DNA of 64,000 nt from Amoeboaphelidium protococcarum X5 (GCA_023515725.1 JALDTO010000200.1:62001-126000); one strand, 5' to 3'; positions 30,190 to 38,200 are shown, numbered from the stretch's first letter. Notes: generated by a model not told the origin, from the sequence alone. Numbers and translations are program-made.

Positions 30190-33100
30190 ATGGATGCTAT
30201 ACTGGATTTTTCGAGAGACTTCAACGTGCAACTCTTTGACCAAGTTGTTAACACTTTCTATGGTGGTCATGGAAATGATCAAAAGATGGCTCAGACTATC
30301 ATTGCCCAATTTCAGGAGCATCCTGACGCATGGACCAGAGCTGATGTTATACTCACTCAGGCACAATCTGTACAAGCCAAGGTAAGCTAGTTATATAATA
30401 TAAATTGCCTAATGTTATCTGTCTTATTGTAAATGAATGTAGTATATTGGGTTGCAAGTGCTTGAAAAGTTGATATCCACCAGATGGAAAGTTCTACCGC
30501 GTGAACAGTGTACTGGTATAAGAGATTTTATTGTTGGAACGATCATCAAGATTGCTAGTGATGAACAGCTGTTTGTGAAAGAACGTGTTTATTTGAACAA
30601 ATTGAATCTGGTTCTGGTGCAGATTCTTAAGCATGAATGGCCAAAGCAGTGGCCTAATTTCATCTCTGAGATTGTGGACTCTTCACGAACAAGTCTGACT
30701 TTGTGTGAGAACAACATGGTTATTCTGAAGTTGTTGAGTGAAGAGATTTTCGATTTCAGTGCTGAATAAATGACTAGTGTCAAGGCACGTACCATGAAGG
30801 ATCAGTTGAATGGAGAGTTTATGAAGATTTTCGAGCTGTGTGATGAAGTTCTGTAGAAGGCGCAGAAGCCATCACTAATTCAGGCGACTCTGTAGACTTT
30901 GCTCAGATTTCTTAATTGGATTCCGCTGGCCTTTGTGTTTGAGACTAATCTGATTAGTATGTTGGTTGGTCGATTTCTGCAGGTGGCTGCTTTTAGAAAT
31001 TACACGTTGAAGTGTCTGACTGAAATTGGATGCCTCGAGGTGAAGAGTGACTATGAGCAGAGATTGATTGAGTTGTACAATGGTGTAGTTGAAGCTCTAT
31101 CTATCCAGATTCCAATGAATCCCCACCTGGATTTCGCAGGACCTTATGAGAATGGATCTGATGAAGAGCAAGAGTTTATTCAGAACATTGCGCTGTTCTT
31201 CTCATCATTCCTCAGTGTTCATGTAAAGCTTCTGGAGAGATAGGATAACAAGCAGCCACTTCTGCTTGGTCACTTGTACTTGCTGAAGATTTCCAAAGTG
31301 GAGGATCGTGAGGTGTTCAAAGTTTGTTTAGAATACTGGTCCAAGTTGGTTAGTGGTTTATACAATGAGTTGCCTTCTACATTGAATAATGCTTCGGGAC
31401 TAGTTTTGAACAGCAAGTAGCCTGAGAGAAAGTTGCTGTACAGTGACATATTGCCACAGCTGAGAGTTGTTATGATTGAGTCTATGGTGCGTCCAGAGGA
31501 GGTGCTGATTGTAGAGAATGATGAAGGTGAAATTGTGAGAGAATTTGTGAAGGAGACTGATACCATCACTTTGTATAAGAGTATGCGCGAAGTATTGGTG
31601 TATTTGACGCATCTAGATCCGGATAACACCGAGTAGATTATGTCTGAGAAGTTGGCCAAATAGATTGATCGCACCGAGTGGTCTTGGTCTAATTTGAACA
31701 AGCTCTGCTGGGCCATAGGATCTATCAGTGGTGCAATGTCTGAAGATCATGAGAAGAGATTTATTGTGTTTGTCATCAAAGACCTGCTTGGTCATACTGA
31801 ATCTGTGCGTGGTAAAGACAACAAGGCTGTGGTGGCATCGAATATCATGTACATTGTCGGCTAGTATCCAAGATTCCTGCGTTCTCACTGGAAATTTCTC
31901 AAGACTGTTGTGCTGAAGTTGTTTGAGTTTATGCATGAGCTGCATGAAGGTGTGCAGGATATGGCGTGTGATACATATATCAAAATTGCGCAAAAGTGCA
32001 AGCGACAGTTTGTAATTATGCAGCCAAATGAAATTCAGCCGTTTATTAATGAAATTCTGGATACTATTCCTGACATTATATCCGACCTGTAGCCGTCTCA
32101 AGTCCATACCTTCTACGATGCCACTGGATGTATTATAGCTTCACAAACGAACAGGTAGACTCAGGAGCAGTTGATTGCCAAGTTGATGGAGGGACCTAAT
32201 GTGGCTTGGGAAGAGGTCATGGCTCAGGCAAATGCTAATCCAGATATTTTGAATCATCCAGATCAAGTTAAGTAGCTGGCTAATATCCTAAAGACTAATG
32301 TTGCCGCATGTTCATCTATTGGTAGTCCTTTTATTTCCTAGATGGCCAAGATCTACATGGATATGCTGAACCTGTATCGTGCCGTGTCTGAGCTAATATC
32401 GAGAGCAGTTGCCCAGGGTGGTGTTTTATAGACCAAGACTCCACAAGTAAGGGGATATCGTACCATTAAGAAGGAGGTACTTAAACTCATTTCAACTTAC
32501 ATTCAGAAGGCTGAAGATTTGCAGGTGGTGATGGATAATCTGATTCCACCACTTCTCGAGGCTGTGTTGACCGATTATGCTCGCAATGTTGAACCGGCCA
32601 GAGAATCTGAAGTGTTGGCTCTGATGGCCACATGTGTATAAAAGCTCGGACCTCTTATGACTGACAAGGTGCCAGTCTTGCTGGAATCTCTTTTTGAATC
32701 CACTTTGCACATGATTGACAAGGATTTCCAAGAGTATCCGGAGCACAGAGTGGCTTTCTACAATATGATTAGAGCCGTCAATTAGAACTGCTTCATCGCT
32801 CTGCTCAATCTACCACCAAACTTGTTCCGTCTTGTGCTGAATGCCATCATTTGGGGATTTAGACATACTATGCGTGATATTGCTGATATGGGCCTGTAGA
32901 TTATGCTGGAACTCTTGAACAATGTGTCAAAGTTGGATTCTAGTATTTCTAGTGCTTTCTATCGCAGCTACTATCTACCTATATTCCAAGATGTATTCTA
33001 TGTGTTGACTGATCGTGAACACAAGTCTGGATTCAAGTACTAGGCACAGATACTGCAGCAACTATGCACTGTGGTTGACTCGAACTCTATTACTCAGCCA

Positions 33101-33448
33101 CTGTACCAACCTGGATAGGTATCTGATCCGAATACTTCTAATTCTGCATTCGTGCGCGAGTATATGATGCAATTGCTACAGAATGCCTTCCCGAACCTGT
33201 AACCGGGACAGATCAAGATATTTGTGAATGGCTTATTTGACTTGAAGGGTGATAGTGAGACATTCAAGTAGCATCTGAGAGATTTTTTGGTGAAGTTGAA
33301 AGAGTTCCAGGCGGCTGATGATAATGAAGAGTTGTTCTTGGAGGAGCGTGAGTTGGAGTTGCAGAAGAAGAAGGCTGCAGAGATGTAGGCAGCCCAGCAA
33401 GTGTCTGGTATTCTGAAGCCGGCTGAACGTGAAGACATGGATGATTGA
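30190..33448 (+). CDS. CRM1: Exportin-1 Crm1/Xpo1; intron 30382-30442
   Basis: [69 protein letters not shown](TAG=Q)YPRFL. Ends [13 protein letters not shown]. Confidence 0.98.
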
Positions 33449-33922
33449 TTATATTGCTGATATGTATATGACTTGATAGTCGGATTTGAGTTGGATTGAA
33501 AGGGGAGGGATTTAATCGGCGTGATACAGCAAAATGGGAATGGGCTGTATAATTGTATTAAGGAGGAAAGTTGAAACAAAAATAATAATGATCAATAGGC
33601 AGTAATAAGAAAATCTATCCATCTAAGATTATGCATTATTGTTATAAAAGTATGGCAATTTCCTTGTTTACATACCGAAAATACAGCTAGCAATCTCTTG
33701 GTGGATCATTAAATTACTACCATAAGCAGATGGTTTGCAATTTTGTGTGTGATCACGCGACACTGATTCTGCCAATTGTCAATTCTCATCTAAGCCAAGC
33801 CGATCTGTTTCTCTTTGATTCGCCCAGCTTCTTCTTTCTCTTTACAGTTGGACAATTACAAGAGATCCTTTTTAATCATTACTAATCTCAATACAAGCAT
33901 TTAAGAATAAAAGTACTTGATA

Positions 33923-35158
33923 ATGAAGCGATCAAGGCATGCAACAGATATGGTGTCTGTCGCGGACTCTGTTAATGATTCCTCTCACTCATTATGTCTG
34001 GAATAGTAGCCATCTCCATCACTATCACAATAATCCTCATAATCATTGCACTCCGCCAACCTATCTGCTGCCTCTGTCAATGATCCCGAAGACGTATTGA
34101 ATGCTGACCTTGTGCGTAAGAAGAAGCGCGGTAAGATTGACACATCGGAGCTGAGTGAGAAGTAAAAGCAGAGGGTATTGAAGAATCGCGCCTCTGCCAA
34201 AGCTAGTCAGATGAAGAAGGAGGTGGCGCTGTAATAGGCCAAGGCTGACAATGATTAACTTCGATCTGAAAATGAATTACTCTAATCTCGCGTACAAGTC
34301 CTGGAATAGTAGAATATCGATCTAATGTCCAAGATGGAGCAGCTGTAATCTTAATTTGAGTTGATGTCTAATATGATATCTACCAATATAGGCTCAGATT
34401 CTAATACAGGCTCTGGTGAAAACAATCTTGATAGTCATGGTCTTAATGATGATTTATCTCCTGATGCAAATGCGTATCTATTACCGCCATCTCCTATCTA
34501 ATCCATATCTACTCATCAATATTAACAACTCCAGCTTTAGGAGTAAGCGGAAAGTCCTCAATCTGCAGTATTGAAGACTGTTCACAGTGACGATATTAAT
34601 ACCAAGTATCCAACTGTGAATATCCGGCAGAGGTTTCCGCTTACTCCCCTGGAATCATCATCAACAACGATGGTGGTGGAATTTCAAGCTTAGCCACAGA
34701 CCGTGGTGTCTAGGAGTAGCTGTTAGTAGAATAATAGTTGTAAGTTGGTACAGAAGAGAGTAATTTCAGCGATATATTCTACCAAGCATTCACTGAATTG
34801 CAACCGCTCTTTGATGAAATTGATGATCTCATTCCTGTCTATAATAATTATAATGATAGTGAATTCGACGTATCTCAATTCAAAATCGAAGAATGTCCTG
34901 CATAGTAAGATCCGAGTGCTTTAGTAGAATAAGAGTCGCTTTCGTTTCTCTAACAGTACCAACAACATTAATCATAACAGTAACTACTCCAAGTAGACAT
35001 AAGCATATGAAGCTATCATCACCTATGGTAGAGAGAGAATGGTAGTCAGAGCGTTATGCGCGTTGGCGATTGTCAATCATCTGGGCCATTACTATTATCG
35101 ATATTACAGAAATCAGATTAAGCGGAAATATGAATTAAATTTACAATAAAGTTTTTGA
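33923..35158 (+). CDS. HAC1: bZIP unfolded-protein-response factor Hac1/Xbp1; unspliced ORF ends 35158, Ire1-spliced form ends 35010
   Basis: Basic region RKKKRGK..EKQKQRVLKNRASAKASQMKK plus leucine zipper. Ire1-type CNG|CAG hairpins at 34563-34569 and 34625-34631. Confidence 0.85.
34566..34627 (+). other. Predicted 62-nt unconventional (Ire1-cleaved) intron
   Basis: TCAAT-CTG|CAGT-ATTGA and ATC-CGG|CAGA-GGT loops, enclosed by a perfect 14-bp exon-exon stem (34540-34553 with 34634-34647). Confidence 0.85.
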
Positions 35159-35231
35159 TTATAATATAATTTTATTTTACTGCTCACTAACTCTGTTCAT
35201 AACATTCGCATACATCTGGTATGATGATCGA

Positions 35232-38200
35232 TCACACATACTCTTTCATCCCCTGAATCAAAGTCTCACGTTTGGCCTTCTCAACTTTCACAATACCACC
35301 AGTGAGAGGGAGGTAGGTGGAGCCCATGAGATCGAGATCTATAGCTCTTGCCGCCTGTCTTCCTTCATTTATGGCCCATACAATAAGAGATTAACCACGA
35401 CGACAATCACCGGCAGAGTAAACTCTAGGTACATTAGTCTTATACTGCAAACCGGAATCTTTGGGCATACCAGTGATAGTCTGACTAGCAACATTACTAC
35501 TTCTGGCGTCTGTCTTCACCTTCAACTGCTGCAGTAAATGCTATTCTGGCCCTGTGAATCCCATAGCCAACAACACCAGGTCAGCCTCGAATACACGTTC
35601 ACTTCCCTCGACTTCAGTCATTATCCATTTACCAGTGGATGCATTCTTCGTCCATTCAACTCGAACCGTTCTGATACCAGACACTTTGCCATTTCCGTCA
35701 GATATGAATTCCTTGCTCAGCACACAGTACTATCTAGGATCATTGCCATGAACAGCTTTCACCTCGCCATGCCCGTAATCAACCTTAAAGACTCTGGGGA
35801 ACTGAGGCCATGGATTATCAATCGACCTGGTGCCTGGAGGCTCAGGCAGCAATTCAAAGTTGATCACAGATTTGGCTCCATGGCGAACTGAAGTACCGAT
35901 ACAATCATTACCAGTGTCACCTCCACCAATGACAATGACATTCTTACCCTTCGCTGTAATATACTAATCATCCTTGAGGTTGGAATTCAAAAGACTCTGT
36001 GTGGTGGCGGTCAGGAAGTCCATTGCAAAATATATACCATCAAGAGCGCGGTTCTTAATATTCAGATCGCGCGGCACAGTTGAACCTGTTGCAATTAAAA
36101 CTGCATCATAATCCCGCACAAGATCTGCGGCATCTACATTGTATCCAATATGAGCATTGTCTTCAAACTTGACACCTTCTTCTCTCATTAAACTCACACG
36201 CCTGTCCACCAACGACTTATCCAACTTCATATTCGGAATGCCGTACATCAACAGACCTCCAATTCTATCGGCGCGTTCATAGACAGTTACACTATGACCA
36301 GCTTTGTTTAATTGATCGGCAGCTGATAGCCCAGCTGGACCACTGCCAATGATAGCTATAGTCTTACCGGAGCGGCGGGATGGAGGACTCGCTTTCATCC
36401 AGCCATGGTCGAAAGCATAATCAATAATGGCACATTCAATAGATTTAATCGCCACAGGATCCGAGTTAATACCCAACACACAAGCACCTTCACACGGAGC
36501 AGGACATACACGACCAGTAAACTCTGGGAAATTGTTAGTTTACAACAGTCTCTCCAGCGCCTCTTTCCACTAGTGCTAATAGACAAGATCATTCCATCTC
36601 GGGATAAGATTTCCAATAGGACAGCCTGTATGAGATTGACAAAATGGGACACCACAGTCCATGCATCTGGCACCTTATACCTATAATTCCTGGGTTGTCA
36701 AACGTTTATTAATCTCTCCAAATCCTTTGACTCGCTCCTGGGCATCTAAATATCTATCAGTCTACCGCTTATACTTCATAAAGCCTCGCAACTTATCGGG
36801 CTTAGAATCAGTCGACTCGGCTACTATCTTGATGGCACCATCTTCAATATCTTTGATAGACGCTGCCAAGGTAGGAGGTTAGATAACAGCCAAGCTACGT
36901 TTATTCTTAATAACTTCCTAAGATTACAAGGCCTTCTTCAAATCTCGCGGAAAGACTTTGACAAATATCTGCACGTAATGCTTCCAGTTGTTAAGGACAG
37001 CCTTTGCTTAGGCAGAATTAGTATACTCATAATGCTTTTGAATCAAACCACGAACTTGATCAATATCAGCAGCATCTGTCAGGCTCTCTAAATCAACCAT
37101 CTCAGGATTGACTAGAGATGGGAAAGACTGATCTTCATCCAAAATATACGCAAATCCACCACTCATACCTGCAGCGAAATTGCGGCCAGTCTTACCCAAT
37201 ACTATACAAACACCTCCAGTCATGTACTCACAACCATGATCACCGACGCCTTCCACAACAACGCGAGCACCTGAATTTCTGACACAGAATCTCTCAGCGG
37301 CCACACCATTAAAGTACGCTTCACCGCTGGTTGCACCATATAGGCACACATTGCCTGATATGATGCTCTAGCTCGGATCGAAAAGAGAATTCTTTGGAGG
37401 GCGCACAATAATCTTCCCCCCTGAGAGACCTTTACCCACATAGTCGTTAGTGTCACCCTCGATTCTCAAGGTGACGCCCTTTGCCAAGAAAGCACCGAAA
37501 CTTTGTCCAGCAGATCCACTAAAATTAATCTTTATCGTATCATCTGGTAGCCCCTGCTCGCCAAACTTTCGAGACACGTTATAGGAGATGATAGCACCAA
37601 CAGAACGGTCAGTATTCAGAACCTGCGAGTTGATAACGACTTGGCCGTGACCCTCCAAAGCAGCAACACACTATGGCAACAGTTTATTATCCAGTCTCTA
37701 TTCAACCATATGGTCCTGTGGCTCGGAGAAATGAGTGCAAGCATCGGCTCGCAAACTAAACGCCGGTGTGAGTAGAGAGCGCAAATCTAAACATGAGCTC
37801 TTCTAATCTTTCTATTAGGAGCGAACTTGCAGCAGATCACTTCTGCCGACCAAATCATTAAGTTTGCGAAATCCAAGCTGAGCCATAATCTGACGCACTT
37901 CCTCCGCCATAAAGTAGAAGAAATTGATAACATCCTCGGATGAACCTGTAAACTTAGCTCTCAACACAGGGTCCTGTGTAGCAATACCAACAGGACACGT
38001 ATTGAGATGACATTTACGCATCATTATACATCCCATAGCAATAAGAGGCGTCGTGGCAAATCCAAACTCCTCGGCACCAAGCAACGTGGCCATTATGACA
38101 TCACGACCAGTCTTGATTTGGCCGTCTGTCTGTAAAGTAATCCTACCACGGAGACCATTCAGCACTAGCGTTTAATGAGTTTCAGCAAGTCCAAGCTCCC

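Follow-up and report, generated by a model that had tools for sequence, protein, structure and literature searches.

A predicted Ire1-excised intron of 62 nucleotides in a divergent bZIP gene of the aphelid Amoeboaphelidium protococcarum

The question raised by the locus described here is whether a bZIP gene of Amoeboaphelidium, a parasite of algae that belongs to the Aphelida, the sister lineage of Fungi, carries an intron that is removed from its mRNA by Ire1 rather than by the spliceosome. The gene resides in a stretch of 64 kb from A. protococcarum X5 (GCA_023515725.1 JALDTO010000200.1:62001-126000), which was analyzed as a whole and is referred to as the window; positions are counted from its first letter. 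Based on the sequence evidence presented in the following, we consider it probable that the spliced gene at 33923-35010 corresponds in aphelids to HAC1/XBP1/HXL1, the bZIP factor through which the unfolded-protein response acts, and contains a 62-nt intron predicted to be excised by Ire1.

The assembly comprises 23.6 Mb with a GC content of about 41%, gene pairs that are about 92% identical and UAR codons specifying glutamine. The published values for A. protococcarum are 24.7 Mb, 40.5% GC and paralogue pairs with 91-93% identity (PMC10608142), and the species is an aphelid known for its UAR=Gln code (PMC5304391). In the long open reading frames of the window, glutamine is represented by 301 TAG, 270 CAG, 246 TAA and 232 CAA codons. 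TAA and TAG were translated as glutamine (code 6) because the region makes sense only with both of them as sense codons. Read in this way, the bZIP gene starts on the plus strand with the ATG at 33923 and is organized as follows:

33923..34565, plus strand: exon 1 (643 nt), beginning with the ATG and ending at G34565, behind which the 5′ cut by Ire1 is predicted; open in code 6
34112..34360, plus strand: bZIP domain, consisting of the basic region KNRASAKASQMKK followed by five heptad leucines
34566..34627, plus strand: predicted unconventional intron of 62 nt (3n+2), containing a TGA of the tail frame at 34586-88
34628..35010, plus strand: exon 2 in the spliced frame, an acidic tail of 126 codons with the stop codon TGA at 35008-10
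34628..35158, plus strand: the same DNA in the unspliced frame, a tail of 176 codons with a hydrophobic stretch and the stop codon TGA at 35156-58

The assignment of the host gene to the bZIP family, made in the first-pass annotation, is borne out by the basic region, the heptad leucines and a profile comparison. By direct reading, the zipper leucines are located at N+25, +32, +39, +46 and +53, which is the bZIP register, and the predicted intron begins about 68 codons downstream of the zipper. When compared by hhalign with the Pfam-verified bZIP proteins of the same genome, the domain aligns in register over 75 columns with 93% probability and an E value of 3e-7. Furthermore, an HMM constructed from the bZIP domains of these Pfam-verified proteins ranks the host ORF first, albeit weakly (10.4 bits, E 0.02), among the 606 ORFs of the window. 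Between the two copies of the gene present in the genome (see below) the pN/pS ratio of the bZIP domain is 0.08, which signifies strong constraint at the protein level.

The basic region is peculiar in that a glutamine (CAG, 34208-10) takes the place of the usually invariant arginine (N-x7-R), such that the residues around 34205-34216 read S-Q-M-K; the replacement is the same in both copies. It may go along with a changed DNA-binding specificity, or it may be the cause for the failure of Pfam models to find the gene. In fact, a six-frame search of the genome with PF00170 (bZIP_1) and PF07716 (bZIP_2) yielded up to 28 other places, and the host locus was absent even at E values up to 10. This result bears on the detectability of the domain more than on its fold, because five in-frame TAA/TAG codons within the domain and the Gln-for-Arg exchange lower any score. 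Protein searches were performed exon by exon with stop-free pieces, and the joined spliced protein was translated and folded locally only. The stop-free pieces of the host gene gave no match in Pfam, being too short to score, and the basic-region piece gave none in a sequence search of the PDB. Judged from these data, the host gene appears as a divergent, atypical bZIP gene in the correct register.

A different pair of small bZIP genes (G000:C98:1695994-1696131, minus strand, and C282:2444-2584, minus strand) encodes a basic region, RERNRLAARKSREKR, that is more Hac1/Xbp1-like than that of the host gene. This pair was considered as the true HAC1 and rejected: its ORF ends right after the zipper and an Ire1-like site does not occur within 1.2 kb.

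The RNA around the predicted intron consists of the following elements, with an arrow denoting predicted sites of cleavage here and below:

34540..34553, plus strand: 5′ strand of stem S1, complementary at 14 of 14 positions to 34634-34647
34554..34578, plus strand: 5′ arm, made up of GUC, a C.A mismatch, UCAAU, the loop CUG↓CAGU, AUUGA and GAC
34579..34622, plus strand: intron-internal hairpin of 10 bp including one G.U pair, a 3/2 internal loop, 6 bp and a 7-nt loop
34623..34633, plus strand: 3′ site, in which CGG↓CAGA occupies 34625-31 and cleavage is predicted between 34627 and 34628
34634..34647, plus strand: 3′ strand of stem S1, pairing with 34540-34553

The 14-bp stem, the CTGCAGT hairpin, the internal hairpin and the CGGCAGA motif, on which the initial proposal of an Ire1-type intron had been built, were all recovered at the positions originally given. 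In the 5′ hairpin, TCAAT (34558-62) and ATTGA (34570-74) close the 7-nt loop CTGCAGT (34563-69) with 5 bp, to which GUC/GAC adds 3 bp, and the predicted 5′ cut lies between 34565 and 34566. The strands of the internal hairpin are GTTCACAGT (34580-88) with ACTGTGAAT (34613-21) and GATATT (34592-97) with AGTATC (34605-10). The proposal had also included two 7-nt loops. This holds for the 5′ loop CUG↓CAGU, which is well closed, but not in the same way for CGG↓CAGA, for which the proposal had named no stem and only two to three closing pairs are possible (C34624-G34632, U34623.G34633, A34622-U34634), and these compete with S1 and with the internal hairpin. No other part of the modeled structure is as weak as this 3′ arm. 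As an alternative to CGG↓CAGA, the motif CAG↓AGGU is found 3 nt downstream. Cleavage at that position, i.e. after 34630, would create an intron of 65 nt, which is retained as a candidate beside the predicted 62-nt intron.

In XBP1 mRNA, cleavage by Ire1 takes place 3′ of a G that is the third nucleotide of a 7-mer loop, within the consensus C(C/U)G↓CAGC (PMC4687415). In the aphelid gene, both junctions conform to CNG↓CAG, position -3 being C and positions -1 and +3 being G, and the 5′ loop matches the consensus (PMC4687415) at six of seven positions. The minimum free energy calculated for 34530-34660 (131 nt) is -49.7 kcal/mol (z = -6.1), a value that was matched by none of 200 dinucleotide shuffles. 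The minimum free energy fold pairs CCUC with GAGG plus part of each loop. A fold in which both motifs are unpaired has -43.0 vs -44.9 kcal/mol, i.e. lies 1.9 kcal/mol above the minimum, and in this both-loops-open fold CGG↓CAGA is situated in an 11-nt single-stranded joint (34623-33), not in a hairpin loop. After excision, the exons are predicted to fold into the 14-bp stem extended by CCUC/GAGG and capped by an 8-nt loop, and the restored CUGCAG would therefore reside outside of a 7-mer loop.

Of the inverted repeats of at least 13 nt whose arms fall within 150 nt, stem S1 is the only non-trivial one in all 64 kb of the window. A scan for paired CNGNNGN loops with lax criteria, which covered the window together with 17 other bZIP loci of the genome on either strand (296 kb of strand), produced about 45 chance pairs. 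An outer helix of 14 bp was present only at the host locus and its twin, and the outer helices of all others did not exceed 9 bp. A twin site after the bZIP gene on contig C207 was discarded as a candidate: it is not conserved in the homeolog and is devoid of an exon-exon stem. Searching 33000-36000 against Rfam did not reveal any relevant match at E values up to 10.

A second copy of the gene is located on contig C158 and is 92% identical over 1.26 kb to the host copy, which lies on contig C200. The copies differ by 5-11% in coding parts and by 23% upstream, and the pN/pS ratio for exon 1 as a whole is 0.38. The structure described above falls into a segment that deviates from this background:

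34536..34656, strand not specified: identical block of 121 nt, zero differences between C200 and C158

No other run of identity in the gene is as long; second to it comes one of 71 nt in the basic region. From its flanks, with a pS of 0.15-0.18 and a pN of about 0.06, some 10 changes would be expected for the block and none is observed. Even under a protein constraint like that on the bZIP domain, about six changes would still be expected. The frozen synonymous sites point to constraint acting on the RNA itself. Compensatory changes cannot be counted because the copies are identical across the structure. The block has exactly two occurrences in the genome, one at each of the homeologous loci, and hence does not belong to a dispersed repeat.

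Two further observations pertain to the two copies. About 165 nt upstream of the ATG, both contain a conserved block, TGTGATCACGCGAC (33748-33761), which includes the palindrome GTGATCAC, in an upstream region that otherwise diverges by 23%; this block may be a promoter element. In addition, the HAC1-like gene and IRE1 are 94-97 kb apart on both C200 and C158, and on account of this similar spacing the two segments are regarded as colinear copies that have diverged by about 8%.

It had been proposed that removal of 34566-34627 shifts the reading frame, and this is indeed the case: the 62-nt excision joins the bZIP domain to a conserved acidic tail. The shift of -1 leads to a predicted spliced product of 341 aa, as compared to 411 aa for the unspliced form. 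Asp, Glu and aromatic residues are abundant in the spliced tail. Its frame is interrupted within the intron by the TGA at 34586-88 and is therefore accessible only if the intron is removed or bypassed. Downstream of the intron, pN/pS is lowest for the spliced tail (0.37), followed by the unspliced frame (0.51) and the third frame (1.76), and the three indels that distinguish the copies in this part are all multiples of three. The phase of the substitutions between the copies did not discriminate between the frames.

When the spliced protein is kept and synonymous codons are resampled according to local codon usage, the unspliced frame is free of TGA over the overlap in 34% of the cases, and the 49 codons beyond the overlap would be TGA-free by chance with a probability of about 30%. 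Of the synonymous resamplings, 18% attain the hydrophobic peak, which has a mean Kyte-Doolittle value (KD) of 2.17 in a stretch of 19 residues. Calculated from few sites, pN/pS for this frame amounts to 0.51 within the overlap and to 0.48 downstream of it. As openness and hydrophobicity both stay within chance, a functional tail like that of XBP1u is not supported beyond chance by the sequence. The region between the spliced and the unspliced stop codon (35011-35158) differs by 7.4% between the copies and is as conserved as coding sequence; it contains two identical runs of 41-42 nt, and its fold is unexceptional (z = +0.4). The region may encode protein in the unspliced frame or represent a 3′UTR element.

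Strong conservation at the nucleotide level and a very stable fold would also be found if the mRNA structure served another purpose, for example in translational pausing, in stimulation of -1 frameshifting, in localisation or in stability, and were not excised by Ire1 at all. Since the tail is encoded in the -1 frame with respect to the bZIP domain, ribosomal frameshifting by -1 is in theory another route to it. The TGA at 34586-88 however confines such a shift to 34589-34630, where neither an X XXY YYZ site nor a structure downstream exists. More generally, two consensus Ire1 motifs with their cut ends side by side on an exon-exon stem are not expected for a structure with any of these other roles, and we therefore hold this explanation to be improbable.

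Still less probable is an ordinary spliceosomal GT-AG intron at 34568-34632 (65 nt, 3n+2), with hairpins that are incidental or modulate splicing. Such a GT..AG pair (GTATTG ... GAG) does exist, the joined frame is open with the same frame change minus one codon, and the size is appropriate given that an intron in the nearby glutamate-synthase gene has 64 nt. The acceptor would be GAG, however, although a better CAG 2 nt upstream is available, use of which would result in a 63-nt in-frame intron, and a CTRAY branch motif is lacking, unlike the situation in the reference intron with its GTAATT...CTAAT...TAG arrangement. Spliceosomal removal furthermore accounts neither for the exon-exon stem of 14 bp and the pair of CNG↓CAG motifs nor for the complete freezing of 121 nt, exon bases among them. 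For the 62-nt deletion itself, no placement provides GT-AG borders. The glutamate-synthase intron (38573-38510, minus strand, 64 nt), the only spliceosomal intron that could be delimited nearby, reads GTAATT...GCTAATC...TGTAG and separates ...GAKPGEGG from ELSGHKV.... Over the approximately 6.4 kb of this gene there is no other frame switch, suggestive of a low intron density. Occurrences of a loose GT..CTRAY..YAG pattern were not above those in shuffled sequences, and an enumeration of ORF junctions proved too noisy to be of use for finding introns.

A chance inverted repeat or a functionless remnant of an inverted-repeat transposon, suggested by the resemblance of a 14-bp inverted repeat around 80 nt to a MITE, is hardly credible in view of a 121-nt block that is confined to two homeologous loci and kept in frame with zero instead of about 10 changes, and of a fold energy attained by no shuffle.

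Excision by Ire1, the reading that we favor, presupposes that the organism possesses the processing enzymes. The first-pass annotation had pointed to a genome without IRE1 as a finding that would speak against it; two intact Ire1 copies are in fact encoded, as two loci match the Ire1 RNase domain (PF06479) with 131 and 130 bits. One of them is situated on the same contig as the host gene, about 97 kb away and outside of the window, and forms an open frame of 948 codons comprising a luminal part, a hydrophobic transmembrane segment, a kinase domain with HRDIKPQN and DFG, and an RNase domain that retains RNK..H and has the motif LLRAMRNKRNHY. A Trl1-type ligase is likewise encoded in two copies, identified by the CPD domain. 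The ORF on C214 (G000:C214:643300-648300, minus strand) has 1051 codons and consists of three modules with the motifs KENG, GLPLSGKST and HVT/HIT. It extends for more than 200 residues past the HxT motifs of the CPD domain. RtcB did not give a match in the genome, in a search whose controls matched in 10 of 14 genomes. A model for the T4 ligase domain did not match in any genome and is hence uninformative. Tpt1, which is needed after ligation by Trl1, gave no match (PF01885) in the six-frame genome search. This is not read as absence because the same kind of search also missed the host bZIP.

Among the described systems, that of Cryptococcus neoformans is the most similar in form. HXL1 contains an Ire1 intron of 56 nt whose IRE1-dependent splicing was shown by RT-PCR; its bZIP protein is not linkable to Hac1/Xbp1 by BLAST, and pairing between 5′UTR and intron does not occur (PMC3154848). 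Common to HXL1 and the aphelid gene are a 3n+2 intron of intermediate length (56 vs 62 nt) downstream of the zipper, CAG at both borders, long products from the unspliced as well as the spliced frame and a divergent bZIP domain. The aphelid gene differs in possessing a well-formed intron hairpin and a perfect 14-bp exon-exon stem, in a shorter spliced product (341 vs 411 aa) and in a host that uses the UAR=Gln code, and its splicing is predicted from sequence.

In XBP1, the exons zip into an extended stem, which ejects the intron and prevents re-cleavage (PMC4687415). The aphelid gene shares with metazoan XBP1 the exon-exon stem S1, cut motifs of the CNG↓CAG type and a long overlapping unspliced frame. 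Just as in the RNA zipper of XBP1, the aphelid exons can extend their pairing, here by CCUC/GAGG, whereupon the restored motif would leave the 7-mer loop. Unlike the 26-nt intron of XBP1, the aphelid intron has 62 nt, an additional hairpin between the arms and a 3′ arm of only 2-3 bp, and the ligase is of the Trl1 type in a genome in which RtcB was not found.

The HAC1 intron of S. cerevisiae has a length of 252 nt and that of hacA in filamentous fungi 20 nt. HAC1 mRNAs have a splice-site hairpin on either side of the intron, whose length varies from 19 nt to about 850 nt, with the introns of yeast HAC1 measuring 250 to about 850 nt (PMC6222058). With HAC1 introns covering this span, 62 nt does not represent a new length class. 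To characterize the aphelid intron as a longer variant goes too far, the HXL1 intron having 56 nt and yeast HAC1 introns being much longer. As in HAC1/hacA, splicing would exchange the C-terminal tail, and the chemistry is likely that of Ire1 and Trl1. Different from yeast HAC1, in which pairing between 5′UTR and intron blocks translation, such pairing is not above the level of shuffles, 28% of which do as well, an exceptional fold is not present in the 3′ region (z = +0.4), and the unspliced frame encounters no stop codon within the intron or shortly behind it.

The Ire1-bZIP pathway is known in yeast, plants and animals (PMC4891664), and its occurrence in an aphelid is therefore expected, not surprising. 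Beyond this genome, the exact pattern of 5′ hairpin plus 3′ motif had no match in metagenome contigs, and a protein-guided scan with a 53-aa piece of the tail gave none either. In a full HMMER search of 1.84 billion representatives with the tail piece, the sole hits were three proteins with repeats (TPR, decapeptide repeats); we treat them as noise. Exact-product look-ups of two small ORFs in the transcript that start with ATG remained without match. In the collection of papers searched, none was found that covers both Amoeboaphelidium and the unfolded protein response.

Taking the sequence and its frames together with the fold, the conservation and the presence of the enzyme genes, we infer cleavage, ligation, stress induction and the function of the tail as follows. 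As seen from sequence and folding, the mRNA forms a bifurcated stem-loop composed of the exon-exon stem, the 5′ arm, the intron hairpin and a poorly paired 3′ site. Upon ER stress, oligomerised Ire1 would cut after G34565 and after G34627. The 14-bp stem would hold the cut exons, four further pairs (CCUC/GAGG) would zip and the 62-nt intron would be expelled. The exon ends would then be joined by the healing-and-sealing ligase of the Trl1 type. The frame change of -1 would replace the unspliced tail of 176 codons by the acidic tail of 126 codons, presumably an activation domain.

A more elaborate version of this switch can be conceived of, in which the 411-aa protein is functional in the manner of XBP1u and its hydrophobic stretch (about 34796-34846 in the unspliced frame) takes the mRNA-ribosome complex to the ER membrane for encounter with Ire1, while ligation is accomplished by Trl1 and the intron hairpin serves as a spacer, fixing how the two cuts are positioned relative to each other. 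We grant such a mixture of metazoan-style and fungal-style design a small chance only; were it true, co-translational targeting of an Ire1 substrate would predate the split between animals and fungi.

The predicted switch places Ire1-dependent bZIP mRNA splicing together with a Trl1-type ligase in the Aphelida. It would be a second case, beside HXL1 of Cryptococcus, in which an intron of intermediate length is combined with a bZIP protein that is too divergent for homology searches. Gene models of the genome will give the unspliced protein of 411 aa and miss the predicted form of 341 aa.
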